A stretch of DNA of 64,000 nt, taken from Macrostomum hystrix. Lineage: Eukaryota; Animalia; Platyhelminthes. Position numbers and translations under genes: made by a program. Positions 30,166-48,030 of the stretch are shown here, one piece after another. The notes under the pieces are model-generated. The model was not told where the DNA came from. It ran no database searches and saw only the letters and a list, made by a program, of their open reading frames with translations. How positions within the stretch are numbered: the stretch's first letter is position 1; each line of letters starts with the position of its first letter. Where the stretch lies: NCBI GenBank assembly GCA_950097015.1, contig CATNEN010000039.1, positions 7,502,001-7,566,000 on the forward strand. Direction: 5' to 3'.

Positions 30166-32541
30166 TCTACCGATATCGCAGTTATTGCTGATCAAAACAA
30201 TGAAGTTCATAATTTCGCTGATTTAAACAACTTTGCCTCAAAGTATTCTCGAAGTCTTGTCAGATTCTGCCCCCATGCTTGCTGCTTCCTAGAGCTACTA
30301 GAAGGTCATTAAAAACGAAATTAGATTATTTCACTTCATTGAAATCCAATTTGCGGGTCATTCTAGAGAGATGAGCGCAAATGAATTAGTTAAAGAGCTT
30401 CTGCCACCTGCCACTCTGCACGGCAGGTGATTGCATGTGAAAATAGTTTTGCTAAATGTGAACACCACAAGTGAATTATTTAAACATAGTGTAATTTTTC
30501 TGTCAAGTGTGAAATAGTCAAAGTGCCAACGAATTATTGCTGGGAAAAATAGGTTTTTAAGAGCTTTTCCGTGACCCATGGGAAATTAAATTCCCAAAGT
30601 ATGGGTCGGAAAATCCTGTTTCTGCAGGATGTCATCCCTTATTGACCTCTCTCCCTTTGGCTAAAATGAATTATAGAGCCGCAGTCTAACTTCCGTGCTC
30701 ATTCTGAGAACCGGGATTTTCTAATCAAGAAGGCCTTGCTACCTGGAAGTGGTGCACGAGTCTCGCAAAGGGACCGGCGACTCAAACAGAAATGCAACTC
30801 TTTGACATAAGCCTGCAATTTTTTTATCTAGGCGCGGAACATAATTCCCGGGCTTAAGCAAAGGACATAATTGTATTTTCTGACTGCATTACGTGCCTTA
30901 GCCAAACAGATAAATCGAAATTTCATCTGTTTTAAACCAGGTAGCAGATGACTTTCACGCAATGATGTTCCAGCTCGAACTTCAGTACGTCTGACGACTC
31001 GCTCGAACCATGAAACTTTTTTGCTGCTAAAACTCTACTACTTTTTTATTGAATCCTCAGTTACCTACGTTTCGTCGAAAATAATTCTAAAATTAAGATC
31101 TGCAGTTCAATTACAATAATTGCGCTTATTCGAATAGACTTCAAAGGACCCAGTGCGCTTATTCGAATAGACTTCAAAGGATCTGGCAACAGAAATAAAA
31201 ACAAGTTCGCTTCTAGATAGTTTTGCTGGCAAACCTATAGTTACATTGAACTAATGACAAATTCGCGGTAACTAAAGGAGCATCTCGTTTTATTTTTGAA
31301 AGTCACCTTACGAAGCTACTCTTTGACATCCTCGTGCACTAGACTTCACGAATGTCTCGAGTACTGTGCACATCTGGCAGTTATTTTTTCTCTACAACTC
31401 GTTGTTGACTTCATTTGCTGTCATGCGATAGTCTCGCGAAACAATACTTGCTCAAGACTTGCTTCTAATTCATGTTCTGGGCTAGTCTAATAATCGCAGG
31501 GTCAGGGGGCGGGGGAGGCGGCCGTCAATATACGAGCGTACCATACTCATTTTGATTACATGCTTTTCCCGAAAGACTAGTAGGCACCCGATGTTTAGCG
31601 CAATTATTTTTCAGGACCTTCCGGCCAATGTCTCTCTATTATTTTCGCCCTTGAAAAACAGAACTTGGATTTAATTATATCGTAGGTGTCTGCGATTATA
31701 TTAATATTTATTCCTGGATTTTCGAAAAATGGAAGCCTAGCCTAATCGATTACTTGATTTGGATCGTATACCAGAATATTTCGGGATCGCGTGTATTTGA
31801 CAGTGAGGATTTCAAGATCGTGTGTATGATAGTGGGATTTTGGGATCGAGTGTTTAAAAGCGGAATTTTGGCCGCAATGTTCTAAACTCAAGTCGGTCAG
31901 TGCAGCTGCAATCTCAGTAATAAAATAGAAAAACTTTCGCTTTGAGTTTGTACTTTAGCAAAATTCTAGCGCAAGAAGAGAATTATTTGCAAAACAACAG
32001 CTATTGCTAAGTTTTTAATTAAGTTCTTGAGATCTGAAGAGATATTGGACAGCGCTATCAGTGAGAAGTTGAAAGGACACGATCTTTATATTAGTATCGA
32101 AGTCTCCTCATTCTGTTATTAACCTAATGTGAAGCAATTTTTTTCTTGCCAATTTGTTTTCTTGTTTGCACTGCTACCTACTCCTTCCTCTCGGGTCACC
32201 GGAATGATTTGACGCTGTGGATGTCCAGTTCAACGAACGTAAAGCTCTGTGTTTATGAAAAATTTCGCTATTCTATCGTTCTGCTCAGCAAGGTTCCGAG
32301 TTCCTAAATAGCAAATTACCGAAAACTAAATTAATCAGCACGTAAAGGAAAGCATAAATGTGGTATTATTATATAAGGCAAACAGCTAGGCACAAGGGCA
32401 TCAGAGTAGTACTCGAATCTCTATCATCTCAATCCTGTACTTATCAATGATCTCAGATGTCTCAGTTTATCATTTAACCCATTTGATTAAATGGCTGTTG
32501 CATTTGCACATTAGTATTTGAATACTATTTTTAGTATAGTA

Positions 32542-32929
32542 GACTAGGCTAGTAATGAAGTCGGTGACTTATTACGGGATGAGTGAGCCGTGATGTATAT
32601 CAAAGTACTGACTACTGATAAAGACTTATTAAAGACTCTGACTGAGACTGACCCCTGCCCTTTTGTTCTCTCTCCTAGACCCGCCATAAATCTCTTGGCG
32701 TTCAGTGATTTCTCAAGCTTTCAATAAAGAGAGGGGGCGCAGTGTATTTAATCATTCGTCCAACTTTCTTAATTATCAATCCCCGCTATATCAAAGTCTA
32801 AATTTCTATTGTCTGCTAAAGTATGGCCCATTTCAATAAGCCATATATTTTAACAACGCAAAGGAAAGGGAAGGGACCCTCTCTGCACTGCATGTGGAGA
32901 GAACTTGGATAAGATAAACTGAGCCGGGC
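32542..32929. repeat. Dispersed repeat of about 450 bp, left part of the copy interrupted by the YR elements (resumes at 37023-37102)
   Basis: 32542-32929 plus 37023-37102 align colinearly with the uninterrupted copy at 37601-38054. Confidence 0.9.
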
Positions 32930-34858
32930 CATTGACATATAACCAAGTGTGCGTAAACGTCTCAAGCTCGTGTATAGTTTATGGCCCAAAGGCCATGAAA
33001 GAAATAGATTGAAGTGTGCAGTAAATTCCGCAACTGTGAGGTAAATGACATGACTATGTGGTAAATACCGCATGAACTGTAGGAATTTATTAAACGAGGT
33101 TAATTCCAAAGCACAATAAACAAACGAACAATGGCAATGCAAAGATTTTGGGGAGAGGTTGAACTCACAAAAATGTAACACATTAAGATGGAGACGAAGT
33201 CTAGAATGTTAATCGGCAATAGTCAGTTCAAAGGTCACATCTTACCAAATGTGCAGTTGGAAACCTGGCCATGAAAATTGAAAACCACCTGTATCTTCTC
33301 ATTGCTTGATGATCCTTCCTGCGTCTTCTCCGTGGAACAAGACTTCTTAGGTGCTGGCTCCCCTGCATTCAGTGAGACGTGCAGAGACTCGCTCATGGCT
33401 TGCATTTCCCCAACGTAGCGAGACCCAAAGCGCAGGTATCGCTCGACTGTCTTGGTCGCTTTGTGGCCTGTTACTTTACAAATGTCAGCGACGTTGTATC
33501 CAGCGGTGGAAAGCTGCTTGATGACCGTTGGTCTGATGCAGTGACCAGTGTAGCGCTTGCTCAATTTGGCGTCCTCACTGATGCGAGCCATCATGCCCGT
33601 CAAGGCATTGGCGCCGAGAGGCTGCTTTCCAAAAAACCAGCCGGTGTTCTGGAAACCGGTCAACCGGGGCTTCAGGAAAAATGCAGTCTCATTCGCACTG
33701 GAAGTGCTGGAAGTGCTGGGAATGCACTCTTCCCTCTTCTGGAGGTACATCCGCAGACATTGCACTGGACACTGGCTGTCTGCACTCGTCATTACGGCTT
33801 CCTTCACATTGCACGCCGATTGCTTGTCTAGGTCTTTCCCCACATTCTTTACTTTCTTCTCCCGAAAGCGTACCACGTCTCTACCGTCCGGTCCTTTCTC
33901 GAACGTGAAACTGTCCGGAGTCAAACCACGTAGCCATTCCCGGCCCCTTGTTCCGAAGTAGTATATCGTGTTGTAGTACACTTCTTGCAACAGTCTAGTA
34001 GGAGTTGAGCGGTCAAAGTAGCTTGTCAGTCGGGTCAAATCCGCCGGTTCAATGGCCTCGAAATGAGTCACGGATCCACCTCGTGTAAAGAATCGCCTGC
34101 CAACTGCCTTCAGGGTCTCATTCGCACCGTAGAACTCTGGATCAGCAATAATATTGAAAGTGCGCAGCCGCATGAAGTGGCGGAACAGGGCAGCACGTAT
34201 ACACACTAGCGTTGCTGGAGAGTAAGGATTTCCGTCCCGGCGCTTTCGTGTCCCATAGAAGTAGCGCAGAGCATAGTTCAGAGTCTCCTTGGTGCACAAA
34301 TCTTCACTTACTCCGATTGCCGGACAAACATACCGACGTACAATTCTTCTTGTCTCTTCGTCCCACGCACCTCGACTTCCTTCTCTAGCTCCTTTAGATT
34401 GTCGTCAAGTTGCATTACAGCGACTTCTTCCTCACTTGGACCTGTAGCTAGTGCCCGGAACCATGTCAAACACCCTCTCCATATCATCAGGTAGCACGGT
34501 TGCCAGGTCGCTTTGGCAGAGTTCGTCCACTATCGACACCACAGACTGCCAGTCTAAGTGAGATTCAATCTCACTTGCCGTCATGCCGGTAATTACGCCG
34601 CCAGGAAACTTAGACAAACCTATTAGGCGGGTTGTTTGCCACACAATCTCAAGTCAACTTGCTGCCCCACTTGATCTCCGTGCATCCCTCTTCTGAGCTA
34701 CTATGCAGTAAATCCCAGACGGGTATTGTCTATGGGCCGAAGGAGCTGGTCTTGCGCACACACACTTGGTCATAAATCAATGCACTTATGCTAGGCTTCC
34801 TAGTGCGTAAATAGTGCGTAGTGCGTAAAAATCGGAAGCCTAGCATAAATCTACCATT
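32930..34858 (-). mobile_element. Crypton-like tyrosine recombinase DNA transposon, element A (about 1.93 kb)
   Basis: Bounded by CATT at 32930 and 34855. Both ends are independently defined by the deletion derivative at 47073-47361. Subterminal IR 32930-32951 / 34761-34782 (19/22) and hairpin 34786-34848. Carries a YR ORF. Confidence 0.85.
33235..34644 (-). pseudogene. Tyrosine recombinase (DUF3504/Crypton type), frameshifted N-terminus, catalytic domain open at 33235-34299
   Basis: GTRGRE, YTGHCIRPT, VTGHK and ERYLR give the R...HxxR...H...Y catalytic set. N-terminal piece 34432-34644 (RLIGLSKFP) matches the element B N-terminus (RLLNLSKFP) but is separated from the catalytic ORF by frame disruptions. 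Confidence 0.85.
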
Positions 34859-37022
34859 GTATCACGCTGGCGCGTGTTAGATGCACGATTTACTGTGCGT
34901 CTAATGTAGTTGTCTATGGCAATTTTCTATCTGAGTAAAAACAACAAGCGTGCGTCTAACGCGTGTAATGCACGGAAAGTGAGTATATTTTAATAAGTAT
35001 ACTTCTGCTACAAGTACAACGAACGAACAACAGGGAATTGTGTAAACAAGGTAGACTGTGTAGACGCCTGACCCAAGTGATTTCCGTTTTAAGTCATTGA
35101 AAATGCTTTACATCGCTTATTGTGTATTCACATCGTGGACCCCCCGTCCTTTCGGTCCCTACACAGGCTTTTGTAAATCCCGATTACAGTTACAGTAACA
35201 GGAACGGTTAGCAGGTGCACAGACAGGGAAAGCGAATGAAGATGAAGGCGTTCTGCATTTGGAAGTTCAGTATGGGAAAAGTTCATTGCTATTACTCACT
35301 CTAAGAATTGAACGTGCAGTTGTTGACAGTGTTGTAGAAGTTGTAAACCACAGTTGGCTTCTTCTTGGCGTCATCACTTGGCGTCCCACCAGCAACGTCC
35401 GACGTGTCAGAAATAATCAGTGACTGGCTCATGACGGTAGAAGAGTCTTTCATAATCACGTCTTGCATGGAATCATCCTTGTGTAGTGCAGAAGCCAAGC
35501 TGACCGACATGTCTCGCATTTCACCGTCCCTTCTGGAGCCAAAGCGTAAGTAGCGTTCTACAGTTCGCGTCTGCTTATGGCCAGTCACTTTGCAGATATC
35601 AGACACACTGTAACCTGCGTTAGATAGCTCCTTTATTACCGTGGATCGAATGCAGTGCGCAGTGTATGACTTTGATAAATTCGCCTTCTTTGAAATGACG
35701 GTCATCAGCTGGCCCAAGGGATTCACACCAATTGCCTTGTTCGGGCAGTACCATGCTCCATTTGCCCAACCAGTCTTTTTCGGCAGTAAGAAGAAAGGAT
35801 ATCTTTTCACCGTCTCCGAACTGCTTGATGGAATCGATTGCTCACGCTGAGCTAAATAGAGCTTCATAGCTTCCACAGGGCAGCGGCTTCTGTCTGGCAA
35901 CGCACTCATAACAGCTTGCTTGACATCGTCACACGAGTTCCTGGAGAGTTCTTTGCCAACATTCTTTACTGTTCCAGCAACAAAGCGCACCACTTCAATC
36001 CCATCGGAATCCGTCTCGAATCGAAAGGAATCATCGCTCAGTGAACGGATCCACTCGCGACCTCTGTTTCCAAAGTAGAAAATAATGTTGTAGTACACTT
36101 CATGAAGTAGCACCTCTGGAGATTTCCGATCGAAGTAGTCAGACAGCCTCTTCAGATCAACAGGCTCGATCGATTGAAAGTGTCGGGCGCGTCCGCCTCG
36201 GGCAATGAAGATTCTGCCCATTGACTTCAGTGTCGTATTGGAAGCATAGAATGCGTCGTCAGTTAGAATATTGATTCGCCTTGTCGACATGAAATGCCGG
36301 TAGAGCGCAGCTCGGATGCAAATCAACGTGGCTGGAGCAAAGTATTCGCCATTCCTCTTGCGAAGTGAGCCATAGAAGTATCGCAATAGACTATCGATCT
36401 CGCGCGGTGTAGAAGTCGCCAAATCACGCTGAACTGACGGATGGTTCTCCATGAAGCTCTGCAACTTACCGACATAATATTCGGTAGCCTTTGTCACACT
36501 CTTACTAGCAGCGGTGTCCTCGATTTCGGAAACGAGCTGTTCCAATTCAAGTAGTTCAGCTTCTTCGTCAGGTATCTTCTTGAAAAGTGCCTCCAGAAGA
36601 TCCTCCTCTTCTCGATCAATCGCCGACTCCGGTAGATTATCAGGCTCGTTCAGGATGTCGTCAATCTCATTGGTGGACAAGCCGGAAATCATTTCGTTCG
36701 GAAATTTGCTCAGATTCAGAAGTCTGACTTTAGTTGGTGGCTCAGCCATATTCTCTCACAAGTGATTTTAATTTAACAGCTTCTTATTCCCTTCTTCGTA
36801 ACACTCAATCAACTTGCGTGCCTTTCACGCATTTTGTCTATGGTTAAGACAAAGTCTAACTGAGCGTGCATCTAACGCGCCATCTAAAGTAGTAAGCCAA
36901 CGTAATACAATGCAACTCATACATCGATTTTTTGTGCTTAAATGGTCTATGGCACTCGTGCGCTGTGCGCACTCGTGCATCGACCATTTAAGCACGCAAA
37001 ATCGATGTATGAATCCTACATT
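34855..37022 (-). mobile_element. Crypton-like tyrosine recombinase DNA transposon, element B (about 2.17 kb, apparently intact)
   Basis: Bounded by CATT at 34855 and 37019. Subterminal IR 34855-34871 / 36896-36912 (15/17). Hairpin with 31-bp arms at 36917-36947 / 36982-37012. Host repeat resumes at 37023. Confidence 0.85.
35301..36749 (-). CDS. Tyrosine recombinase (DUF3504/Crypton type), 482 aa, intronless
   Basis: ATG-initiated open frame with GNRGRE, CPV, YTAHCIRST, VTGHK, ERYLR and a C-terminal YNF..TVNNCTF tail. No RT, DDE or helicase domain nearby. Confidence 0.92.
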   Translation of the reverse strand: MAEPPTKVRLLNLSKFPNEMISGLSTNEIDDILNEPDNLPESAIDREEEDLLEALFKKIPDEEAELLELEQLVSEIEDTAASKSVTKATEYYVGKLQSFMENHPSVQRDLATSTPREIDSLLRYFYGSLRKRNGEYFAPATLICIRAALYRHFMSTRRINILTDDAFYASNTTLKSMGRIFIARGGRARHFQSIEPVDLKRLSDYFDRKSPEVLLHEVYYNIIFYFGNRGREWIRSLSDDSFRFETDSDGIEVVRFVAGTVKNVGKELSRNSCDDVKQAVMSALPDRSRCPVEAMKLYLAQREQSIPSSSSETVKRYPFFLLPKKTGWANGAWYCPNKAIGVNPLGQLMTVISKKANLSKSYTAHCIRSTVIKELSNAGYSVSDICKVTGHKQTRTVERYLRFGSRRDGEMRDMSVSLASALHKDDSMQDVIMKDSSTVMSQSLIISDTSDVAGGTPSDDAKKKPTVVYNFYNTVNNCTFNS

Positions 37023-37347
37023 GACATTAAACAAAAGGGAGGGGCTGGCCCGCTATAGCCCCCTTTAAGCCACAGACAACTCAGGCTGAGAGAACCCCCC
37101 TCCCCGTTTGTACGCACAGTGCAAAACTAATTGGAAATTATGCTCGCAACTTGCATTTGCATTCTTTTATTTGTCAGAGTGCTTCAATTCTATAAATTCT
37201 ATACCACACTTCATCACTTTATTGTTTCCTGTCTTGCACAAGCTGCATGTGCATTTAAGTATATCTTGCCTTAGAATCGGGGGCGCGTGTGTTTCGAGAG
37301 ACAGACACTCTGGTTGCAGAGAAGGCAACATTTATAAACTATAAGCC

Positions 37348-40300
37348 ATGCTAAAATCAGCAAGCCAAGGCAAAGTGGTCTTCTTAGTGTTGTTGATGGT
37401 GTCCGTGTTTATCACTGGTTCCTACTACTTTGCATTTCAAGGACAACACTCGTGGAATCATGCATTGCCAAGTTTGCCTAGCCGAGAGAGCACCAAGTTT
37501 CAACATCTTGCAACCGCAGCTCTACCTGATGGTAATTGATCCATTGTTTCCTTTTCGATTCACTATGCCATTAAATAAGTAAAATTTGTCAATGTACGGT
37601 GACTAGGCTAGTAATGAAGTCGGTGACTTATTACGGGATGAGTGAGCCGTGATGCATATGCATATCAAATACTGATAAAGACTTATTAAAGACTGACTGA
37701 CCCCTGCCCTTCCGTTCTCTCTCCCAGACCCGCCATAAATCTCTTGGCGTTCAGTGATTTCTCAAGCTTTCAATAAAGAGAGGGGGCGCACGCGCAGTGT
37801 ATTTAATCATTCGTCCAACTTTCTTAATTATCAATGCCCGCTATATCAAAGTCTAAATTTCTATCGTCTGCTAAAGTACGGCCCATTTCAATAAGCCATA
37901 TATTTTAACAACGCAAAGGAAAGGGACCCTCTCTGCACTGCATGTGGAGAGAACTTAGATAAGACAATCTGAGCTGGGCCATGTACATTAAACAAAAGGG
38001 AGGGGCTGGATAGCCCTTCAAGCCACAGACACTCAGGCTAAGAGAACCCCCCTCGATTTTTATCGATCGGGCGGCACAGCCTTGAGGCTTTATGTACATT
38101 CAAGCCTCAATAGACAGAAATCTCGTCCCCACAAACAAACACTGACAAATGCATGGAGGGCTGTAGCCTGTGTATTTTAAGGCAAGATTTAACTAATGAA
38201 ATTTCGGTTTCAATTTTCATGTGATGCAAAAAAAAGTTGATAGCAAAAAGCAGGATGATCTTTCATTAATTACTGCTTACTTCCTATTCATATTTCATCA
38301 GATAATTAAACTTTCCAAGACTAAAGCACCATATTCATTTCAATGCTGGGCACACAATTTATATGCGATTACTTAACCATTTTAGCACAATTTTCACTCA
38401 AGGTTGCATTATTTGTGGGATGAAAAAAATCACGTTTTATAAATGAAAATCAATACTGTACATCTCAAATGTGATGCACAGCTTTAAGTGACATGTCATT
38501 GTCTTGGAAACATCTAGACGCATATATTGAAACCATTTTCAATGACATTGGGGCAAATAACAACATTTTATTAGAGTAAACTCGAAAATGCTGCTTCTCT
38601 TAAAAGTACTGCATCGTGTACTGACGCTCAATCAATGTTCACAGGCAGGCATGGATGCTGTCCTTTTGAAGAGGGCTCTAAATGCTATCCAACGACGCCA
38701 AACTTGATTCGAGAAATTGCACTACTAAAATCTTATGAGTAATCTTATGAGAAATTGGCATAGGCCCCGGGTGTAAAAATTGCTGCAATGTGCCTTCCAT
38801 TTCGAAAAATCAAATTTTCCAACACTAATGCAGCTGCTCATCGGATGCGGCATAGTATTGGGTACATTTAGTCTCTGTACATGAAAAAAATTCGCAAGAC
38901 CGTTTTTACAAAATTTACCTTTAAAGGTTCGAAAAATTGCATGATTTATTCAATTTCTACAAAAACAACACGTTTTGCAGTTTTGTACCTCGAAAAATGC
39001 AAAAATTTGCAAAATTATAAAAAAATCACGTTTTTTTACTTGAAATGTCAATACCATTAATCATATGCCTCGCACTGCTTCCGTTGACAGAGCAAATATT
39101 TATAGGACATCTGTTAGCGTCTATTGACACCATTTTCGGTTCAATGCGACAAAGTGCACTATCGTAGGGGCGAAAATGGCAAACTTTTTCTCATACATAC
39201 ACCTGTACAGGTACATATTTTAGTACAGATCGCCAGCTACTGAATATGCGTACACGAGTCTAGCATCAAATGAAAGAGGGTCTTAAATGCAATTCAGCAA
39301 CGCTAAACGCAACACCAACGGATGCAGTAATCAAAAGTTATGACTGATCCTGTTTTGCATGTTTTAGCCCCCCGGAGGGTCAAAATTTTGGATTTTCGCA
39401 TCCACCATCGGGGCAAGTGGATGATTAGAAAATTCGAGATATACATTTTGTGCGCACATCTGTTGCGCTTCTAAAAACTGAAGCCGCATTCGAATCACAC
39501 ACCAAATACGTTCTGGCCATGCAGTTTTGTACCTCGAAAAATGACTAAAAATGACCAAAATCACGTTTTTAGGATTTAATTACCCACATCTTCGGTAAAC
39601 AACATTCAATCAGTCTGAAACCAACATTTTCGTATAGGCGACACCCAAGAAAGTTGGTTGACATGTGTTGAAATGCGATTCAAGTCACACGTCTGTGTCA
39701 TAGAGGCGTCCAAAGTGCACCCTGTACTTAAAGTACTTTAAAAGTGCACATTTATTTCAATCACAAAAGTACACGGTCAAAAAATTTCTCCACCATCAAG
39801 TAGGCCTATGTGTTAGGGTTACGATCCCGCAAGTCAAAGTCCGCGCTAGCGCGCGGCCTTTGACTTGCATGGTGAGAAAGTTTAAAAACATGCACATTTT
39901 TTCAACCTGAAAAACCAGTTTTTCAAACCAAAAGATGGGTCAGCAAGAAAAAATTCATATCAAATCATTGTAGGCTTCTATAGCCCGCATCGACTGGATA
40001 GAACCACTTGGCGATACCATAAAATGCCGGCTTAAGCGGCCAAAGACCATTTTTCGTCACGTCCAAAAAAATCATGTTTTTGGTTGCCATGGCAACGATT
40101 TTCACATCAGTGCATAGACCCGAGTCTTTTACATGCTTTGCAAAAAACCGCATCCAAATCGGTTCAACTGGGAAAAAGCGGCAATCGTTAAAAGTAAAAA
40201 ACGTGCTTTTCTATCCCGACACGTTGGCTACGTCTTATCAAGATGAGATATCGCATCCGTAATGACCAAGAGAAAGCCTCGCTTACGCTCGGCTTCCTCT

Positions 40301-46912: not shown

Positions 46913-48030
46913 CATGGATGAATGAATAGAATGGATTGCTATTCTGGCTCTGGCTATTTTCGTTTTTGACTCTTTTGCATCCGGTTCCCCCGTGCCTTTT
47001 TATTGGTTGATGATTGCCATAGACAATATTCGGCCTTCGCCCCTTTCTTTCACACAAGCGCAAAGAACTGAGAATGGTAGATTTACGCACTAGGAAGCCT
47101 AGCATAAGTGCATTGATTTATGACCAAGTGTGTGTGCGCAAGACCAGCTCCTTCGGCCCATAGACAATACCCGTCTGGGATTTACTGCATAGTAGCTCAG
47201 AAGAGGGATGGCACGGAGATCAAGTGGGTCAAGATAGTCATGTCATTTACCGCACAGTTGCGGAATTTACTGCACACTTCAATCTATTTCTTTGATGGCC
47301 TTTGGGCCATAAACTATACACGAGCTTGAGACGTTTACGCACACTTGGTTATATGTCAATGTCGGTTACTTGCAGAGATTATCGAGCGCTCGTTATTCTC
47401 TGGTTACTTGTTTGTCAATTGAAGTTGTTAATTGAAGCAGAGGAATGATAACAAATCCCCTGCAAATTACAACAGTAATGATTTCAGATTTTTTATGTCG
47501 AGGGTGATGATGAGGGTGCGATGACAATGCTACAATAATGGATTACTGGCGATGCTTTATCTGAATTTTACTATTGGAGTTATGAAATTGGTTTTAAAGT
47601 TCTATTTCAACACAAGTAACTTCTATTTCGCCCAGAACTCTCCCGGCCTAAGTAGTAAGTTCAGTTTCATCATCGAGGGAGTTATTTGTGTGTGCCCTTT
47701 TAGTAAGTTCTATTTCTTCAGCGACACATCAAAACTTGTGGTACACGATTCAATTAACGTACATGACAACACAGACTGTTAGAATGGTGAAATTGAGTGA
47801 AATTGGAACAGGAAAACAACACACATAACGAGCGCTCGATAATCTCTGCAAGTAACCGACATTCTCAGTTCTTTGCGCTTGTGCATCGAAAGAAAGGGAC
47901 GAAGGCCGAAAATTGTCTATGGCAATCATTAACCAATAAAAAGGCACGGGGGGAACCGGATGCAAAAGATCAGTCAAAAACGAAAATAGCCAGAGCCAGA
48001 ATAGCAATCCATTCTATTCATTCATCCATG
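46913..48030. mobile_element. MITE with about 200-bp TIRs and 8-bp TSD (P-element-like or hAT-like)
   Basis: Termini CATGGATGAATGAATAGAATGG. TSD TATGTACG at 46905-46912 and 48031-48038. Left TIR is interrupted by 47073-47361. Confidence 0.85.
47073..47361 (+). mobile_element. Non-autonomous deletion derivative of YR element A (289 bp, inverted relative to A)
   Basis: Reverse complement equals 32930-33057 joined to 34666-34858 (less 39 bp) with very few mismatches. AATG at both ends; the intact right TIR shows a single CATT at 47860-47863. Confidence 0.92.

Follow-up and report, generated by a model that had tools for sequence, protein, structure and literature searches.

Two Crypton-type tyrosine recombinase transposons joined head to tail at a shared AATG core in the genome of Macrostomum hystrix

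The stretch of DNA analysed here (hereafter, the window) comprises 64,000 nucleotides of the genome of the flatworm Macrostomum hystrix (contig CATNEN010000039.1, C39:7502001-7566000), and all positions below refer to it unless another contig is named. The locus under study is located on the minus strand at 32930–37023 and contains two transposons with tyrosine recombinase genes, designated B (upstream) and A (downstream). Two open reading frames (ORFs) were found on this strand, at 35301–36749 (482 aa) and 33235–34299 (354 aa). The word CATTG occurs on the plus strand at 32930–32934, 34855–34859 and 37019–37023, and the middle copy constitutes both the final five bases of B and the initial five bases of A. 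A first-pass annotation of this sequence had proposed that two diverged Cryptons are stacked head to tail through one crossover site. A scan of positions 32000–38500 against Rfam revealed no RNA family.

Element B is a complete Crypton of 2169 bp (34855–37023, minus strand). A BLAST search of the genome itself found about 10 copies of B with 92–99% identity, all running from 37023 to 34855, and the contigs of related organisms break at the same two positions. The recombinase ORF of B (35301–36749) is intact. The 5' end is formed by a terminal palindrome (36908–37023) that extends from a CAATG foot to a CATTG foot and has 35-nt arms at 36917–36951 and 36978–37012 (inverted repeat I1, 91% complementary). 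An inner inverted repeat follows, whose left arm (36896–36912) is an inverted copy of the B 3' end, being complementary to 34855–34871 at about 15 of 17 positions. The 3' terminal arm itself (34855–34871) ends in CAATG and was identical in 11/11 of the B copies examined. Its last five bases are the shared junction CAATG (34855–34859; core AATG, or CATT on the plus strand), at which the matches to B end (34855) and the matches to A start (34859 or 34858).

Element A (32930–34859, minus strand, 1930 bp) has both ends complete and a broken recombinase frame. A-type copies elsewhere in the genome run from 34859 or 34858 to 32930, and in a related organism A alone ends at 32930 and 34858. The 5' terminal palindrome of A (34778–34859) is shortened in the window copy and has perfect 15-nt arms at 34786–34800 and 34834–34848 (inverted repeat I3). 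The left arm of the inner inverted repeat (34758–34782; I2, 25 nt) is 84% complementary to the 3' terminal arm (32930–32954), which ends in CAATG and is conserved in 73 genomic 3' ends. The catalytic part of the recombinase is encoded by the 354-aa open frame at 33235–34299. Comparison with the A paralogue L032 and with contigs of two organisms showed that window A has four extra bases near 34445–34448 and lacks 19 bases near 34325. Because of this gain and loss, the N-terminal part (34300–34584) is broken twice, while the catalytic part stays open. In the paralogue L032 the frame is intact (476 aa), yet the element's first 254 bp are absent from this copy, and no fully intact A copy was found among the A copies examined. 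Thus, the earlier description of two recombinase genes with full catalytic sets is valid, with the correction that the N-terminal part of the window A gene is not intact.

The A recombinase was attributed by Pfam to DUF3504 (PF12012; 43.3 bits with a cut-off of 29.7) and to Phage_integrase (PF00589; 31.2 bits, over the cut-off). For the B recombinase, Phage_integrase scored 27.4 bits with a cut-off of 27.1, and DUF3504 scored 28.9 bits, just below its cut-off of 29.7; the homologues of B bear PF12012. The R/K/HxxR/H/Y catalytic set is present in both proteins, as the first-pass annotation had stated. In an alignment of nine sequences, including seven database relatives and the intact A paralogue, R229/R231, K262, H365, R368 and H391 were invariant, that is, both arginines of the RGRE box, the lysine of the beta-hairpin, the HxxR motif and the late histidine. 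The tyrosine of the RY motif was found in both A and B. Modeling of the B protein using AlphaFold led to a model with a mean predicted local distance difference test score (pLDDT) of 62.5 and a core of 70–90. A Foldseek search with this model returned Cre-loxP complexes as the top matches (E ~1e-8, prob 1.0), followed by the Crypton-derived protein QRICH1, the integron integrase IntI, Xer recombinases and the Tn1549 integrase.

Each of the elements, 1.9–2.2 kb in length, contains one long ORF on the sense strand, and the Pfam search found no domain beyond the recombinase type in either protein. A repeat search detected no long direct repeats in the region of A or B. Cryptons are distinguished from DIRS and Ngaro elements by the absence of reverse transcriptase and of long terminal or split direct repeats. 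A and B each encode a recombinase, have neither reverse transcriptase nor long terminal or split direct repeats and end in short direct repeats matching the target. Judging by their sequences, the two proteins appear to be recombinases of the DUF3504 or CryptonA kind without a C-terminal DNA-binding domain, and the Crypton identity proposed in the first-pass annotation is in agreement with this. Among named homologues, a DUF3504 protein of Macrostomum lignano comes nearest (46% identity), and a stretch identical to B occurs inside one gene model of M. lignano. The Crypton population of the genome is large and diverse. At first look 661 candidates were found, and the 88 scored recombinase matches showed 31–100% identity to B, many of them with open frames. 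Further pairs of neighboring recombinase genes on the same strand were present among these matches (on contig C34 near 1.47 Mb, on C33 near 3.59 Mb and in the rest of C7, near 4.97 Mb).

The A and B proteins are 51% identical over 369 aa. The two elements are alike in orientation and architecture, as would be expected if one element had been duplicated in tandem long ago and the copies had diverged in place. However, window B is approximately 99% identical to dispersed B copies and window A approximately 98% identical to dispersed A copies. In addition, the nearest relatives of B are found elsewhere in the genome, namely family G (61%) and another family (53%), both closer to B than A is. An old tandem duplication can hence be practically dismissed, and a recent one had already been rejected in the first-pass annotation on the basis of the divergence.

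The dispersed copies also define the ends of the elements. A pattern search of the genome counted 46 5' ends of the A type and 73 such 3' ends, most of which belong to short non-coding derivatives. Together with the B copies and one more long A copy, they place the element ends at the coordinates given in the first-pass annotation. Long A copies are few, and many A derivatives are about 320 bp long, with the first ~195 bp of the element joined to the last ~119 bp. In the related organism, contigs break at 32930, 34855/34858 and 37023 and then run into unrelated DNA; A (~99% identical) and B-like copies occur there apart from each other, with the same end coordinates. Contigs of a third organism contain B only. 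The three CATTG words, which had been predicted to be element junctions, are consequently true termini at which copies in both genomes stop, and each element has its own pair of ends, the middle word serving both. Two side observations concern these copies. One A derivative is present in the window itself on the plus strand (47077–47361); it is non-autonomous, 285 bp long, has a collapsed 5' palindrome and lies between AATG (47073–47076) and its own terminal CAATG. The B-like copies of the related organism (run X9) differ from window B by ~140 changes, of which 55 are C>T and 45 are G>A, a deamination-like bias.

To evaluate the target, the left junctions of 27 independent, non-stacked insertions from three families were compared. 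Position −4 was A in 26/27 cases, position −3 was A in 23/27, and positions −2 and −1 were T and G, respectively, in 27/27. The full AATG preceded the element in 22–23 of the 27 insertions, which corresponds to the CATT crossover site postulated earlier, and the 3' ends finish in CAATG, rare variants aside. The elements thus stand between direct repeats of AATG (CATT on the plus strand), a 4-bp target. Terminal direct repeats of 4–6 bp matching the target are characteristic of Cryptons and are known from other groups of them. The pooled flanks showed a weak preference for T at −6 and −7, and no downstream or right-side target signal was found in the flanks of the 27 junctions. A more extended target was considered at the site of the present insertion, where the flanking repeat matches the A 3' arm at 7–8 of 11 bases. 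It is not claimed here, the pooled flanks giving only the weak T at −6/−7.

The flanks of the pair belong together. The 82 bases to the left of B (37024–37105) and the 388 bases to the right of A (32542–32929) are the two halves, on the minus strand, of a repeat designated family C, and in other copies of this family the halves are contiguous, with the site present once. In L037, the paralogue with the highest similarity (95% identity), it has the AATG form, and most others have CATG, including the uninterrupted counterpart of the insertion site in the window (37979–38005, plus strand). Comparison with these paralogues indicates that B and A together occupy a single AATG site in a non-coding repeat older than themselves. 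Family C itself is at least 1 kb long, has no long ORF and is present in a dozen or more genomic copies with 83–95% identity. In the window, copy 1 extends from 37601 to at least 38600, and copy 2 is the interrupted one. A joint that skips 4091 bases, found in two read sets, was considered as an empty allele and rejected, as it has family C consensus bases and ~6% mismatches, which identifies it as a paralogous repeat copy.

A pair with AATG on both sides in a single filled site might also be one composite element, with A and B moving together as a two-gene unit of 4.1 kb; any insertion as a unit, such as that of a fused circle, would leave this trace. The BLAST search of the genome found no other locus with such a B-A unit. 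The inner ends of all other A and B copies adjoin unrelated DNA, and the two elements occur apart in the related organism. The one other locus at which both occur (L007/L067) was considered as a second B-A stack and rejected, since B is followed there by 42 unrelated bases and then by a short A derivative, the left end of which is degenerate. A composite element is accordingly very unlikely. The first-pass annotation had named a fixed-order unit and copies ending at unrelated sequences as the observations that would count against its reading. Each element was found alone in both genomes, in unrelated flanks, and the copies share their end points, the left one being preceded by AATG in 22–23 of the 27 insertions.

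Besides the window pair, the genome yielded five other joints that are base-exact and head to tail. At L066 a B copy with 94% identity and many stops lies upstream of a B copy with 99% identity, and 5 bp are shared. Two A derivatives are joined at L064, and the 3' end of family G is joined to an A derivative at L063. L065 has an A 3' remnant upstream and an A-type palindrome followed by the body of family G downstream. At L070 the 3' arm of another family is followed by its palindrome and the 5' arm that matches it, and the recombinase remnants on the two sides differ. The partners vary from locus to locus, and the stacks are therefore separate events. In all six cases (the window pair, L066, L064, L063, L065 and L070) neighbors of independent origin have the same orientation and share one copy of the core.

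Two of these loci are of interest in themselves. L065 (G000:C5:1328700-1331800, junctions near 1497–1605) is a hybrid in which a 28-bp A 3' remnant and an A-type palindrome precede an inner arm and a gene that both belong to family G, which suggests an exchange between families at the inner CATT foot. L070 (G000:C33:1802072-1805087, ~1480–1620) displays the order 3' arm, CAATG, palindrome, CATTG and perfectly matching 5' arm, with diverged recombinase remnants on both sides; this joined configuration is a chromosomal tandem junction. A near miss was found at L017 (G000:C7:4973442-4977271, ~877–975), where an element of family H is inserted at an AATG inside a copy of family G, 22 bp short of the 3' end of that copy, and the recombinase genes are co-oriented. 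Two more genome matches to the junction 16-mer (L068, L069) had no Crypton features and were discarded as chance matches.

The number of stacks was compared with a chance model based on ~2.07 million AATG sites (~9.4 per kb) and 150–2000 resident copies. In this model, B and A would have landed separately at arbitrary AATG sites, element ends would not be favored, and the shared joint would be coincidental. The target is only 4 bp long, transposons pile up in repeat-rich DNA and the locus sits inside an older repeat, all of which makes such a coincidence easier. Nevertheless, 0.01–0.3 base-exact stacks are expected by chance versus at least 4 observed (P 2e-10 to 2e-4), or at least 4–6 with varied partners. 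Chance adjacency is thus improbable. The exact stacks of other make-up, being far above chance, support a regenerated att-like junction, as the first-pass annotation had suggested.

Taken together, these data indicate that A and B are very probably independent transposons of the DUF3504/CryptonA kind, stacked by site-specific recombination at a junction that retains AATG. Several points weigh against this interpretation. Neither a circle nor an excision product was seen in the short-read contigs, which break at repeats. Window A, its frame being broken, could not have mobilised itself in its present state. The chance model presumes uniform use of AATG sites, and more stacks would be expected if insertion favored repeat-rich DNA; such a bias would hardly yield base-exact joints. 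As for the cassette-like arrays proposed earlier, stacks do recur, but the head-to-tail arrays shown are pairs, none longer. Finally, no contig bridging 34855 was listed among the four read sets, and the assembly is the sole source for the junction. The latter would also be the case if the assembler had misjoined two elements at a repeat boundary. The neighbors, however, have 5 bases in common, too few for an assembler join, and contiguity is high, the 220-Mb assembly consisting of 42 contigs. In addition, base-exact joints recur elsewhere with other partners, and the outer flanks fit one target site. An artefact of this kind is therefore hard to credit.

Stacking by site-specific recombination could proceed as follows. 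The Goodwin model for Cryptons posits recombination between the end of an element and a near-identical target. A circular form of the element would recombine with the target at the AATG core and leave AATG at both junctions, and a stack would arise when the same reaction takes place on an element junction instead of naked DNA. A circle of one element could recombine with the AATG at the end of a resident element. Alternatively, circles of A and B could fuse at their cores, and the fused circle could enter the lone AATG site of the older repeat. Since the core is asymmetric, the product would necessarily be head to tail, its members having a single AATG in common. In the window, an identical product would result whether B entered the left junction of A, A entered the right junction of B or a fused A+B circle was inserted, and neither the bases at the junction nor the divergence of the copies is informative on the order. 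The proposal that one element integrated precisely into the end of the other is hence in line with the single filled site and the recurrent stacks, but the sequence of events that it implies cannot be told from a fused circle. Sequential entry is favored at L066, where the upstream copy is decayed and the downstream one young. The circles, the recombinase activity, the junction preference and the order of arrival are inferred by us from sequence.

The ends of four families (A, B, G at L015-L017 and H in L017) have a common layout. Directly after the AATG core comes a long imperfect palindrome with CAATG at one foot and CATTG at the other, and next to it is an arm that is an inverted copy of the 3' end. 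In A and B the gene comes after this inner arm and is followed by the 3' end finishing in CAATG. The stem sequences differ among the families, and the foot motifs are similar. The DNA fold of the B palindrome was estimated at −43.2 kcal/mol (z −12.4). As single strands, the palindromes of the other families also fold much more stably than shuffled sequences, with z values of −10.8 for the full-length version found in an A derivative, −5.7 for H and −4.2 for G; window A gave −3.7. Were the element circular, the 3' arm would be linked through AATG to the palindrome and the palindrome through CATT to the 5' arm, all as parts of a single large symmetric site. The palindrome might be extruded or folded, like integron attC or CTX-phage sites; the fold, as calculated, would be compatible both with a folded strand and with duplex DNA bound by a dimer.

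Long palindromes are expected to be unstable. The palindromes of these elements are often internally deleted or one-armed, as at the 5' ends of the B copies L004, L005, L006 and L010 and in window A (34778–34859), and copies with reduced palindromes may have lost a working end. A tentative extension, which we consider rather doubtful, is that junctions left by Crypton insertions are preferred docking sites for circles of their own family and of other families that share the AATG core and have similar innermost arm bases. The palindrome with its AATG/CATT feet would then be the working site, and accretion and swaps of end modules would follow.

Animal Cryptons are similar to A and B in having one DUF3504-type tyrosine recombinase gene, no reverse transcriptase and a length of about 2 kb, and also in their abundant short non-autonomous derivatives made of 5' and 3' parts (PMC3212892). 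However, no terminal repeats, direct or inverted, were found in animal Cryptons (Kojima and Jurka 2011, PMC3212892), in contrast to the base-exact ends of A and B with their 4-bp AATG direct repeat, subterminal inverted arms, long 5' palindrome and stacking. In a 2026 study of fungal CryptonA elements, the boundaries could not be fixed (PMC13465315). The active element CryptonF-1_cRei of Chlamydomonas ends in CACCG and targets CAYCG, and clean excision leaving the target was observed (PMC9977147). Here too the terminal motif equals the target motif (CACCG/CAYCG there, AATG in the present case), which fits the Goodwin model. CryptonF-1_cRei differs in belonging to another Crypton group, and no terminal palindrome or head-to-tail stacking is reported in the text consulted (PMC9977147). 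Moreover, activity was seen directly in Chlamydomonas, while for A and B it is deduced. A literature search found no account of tandem or head-to-tail Cryptons, nor of Cryptons in Macrostomum.

Tandem accretion is known for bacterial integrative elements such as Salmonella genomic island 1 (PMC2297512) and tDNA island arrays (PMC4891358). There, a circle is integrated by a tyrosine recombinase at a short core, both junctions regain this core, and one of them is then entered by another element of like or different kind. The resulting arrays are head to tail with neighbors sharing one core, just as would be the case for A and B. The differences lie in the eukaryotic host of A and B, the 4-bp core, the absence of a tRNA-gene target and the nature of the units, which are selfish, 2 kb long and without cargo. 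Tandem genomic islands can be regarded as the closest parallel, by a likeness of mechanism and not by common membership.

An integron captures promoterless cassettes by means of a single platform integrase, next to which lie an attI site and a promoter. Integron arrays (IntI, attI, attC) resemble the present stacks in that the units are bounded by imperfect palindromes, the feet of which bear inverted core motifs, and are joined head to tail by a tyrosine recombinase. In contrast, A and B have no platform integrase, attI or common promoter, each unit carries its own recombinase gene or derives from one that did, and the stacks are dispersed. Of the two likenesses drawn in the first-pass annotation, the one to tandem genomic islands is therefore retained and the one to integrons is not. 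In the case of Cre/loxP, the B model is closest to Cre, and, the palindrome aside, the inverted arms flank AATG+CATT as an 8-bp lox-like spacer. Unlike loxP, the site has a 75–115-bp palindrome in the middle of the spacer, and its chromosomal partner is a 4-bp core with weak context.

Several vertebrate genes descend from animal Cryptons, and the recognition of ends and targets by animal Cryptons is little understood. At the locus described here and its relatives, the ends are defined to the base, the core is 4 bp long, the architecture of the ends is conserved and recombination between families has left natural products, with which the question of end and target recognition becomes amenable to bench assay. 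If the junction preference is true, it would explain the pile-ups of co-oriented Cryptons in this genome. Cryptons would then accrete head to tail and swap end modules across families, as at L065, and would represent a eukaryotic counterpart of bacterial island accretion and cassette recombination.

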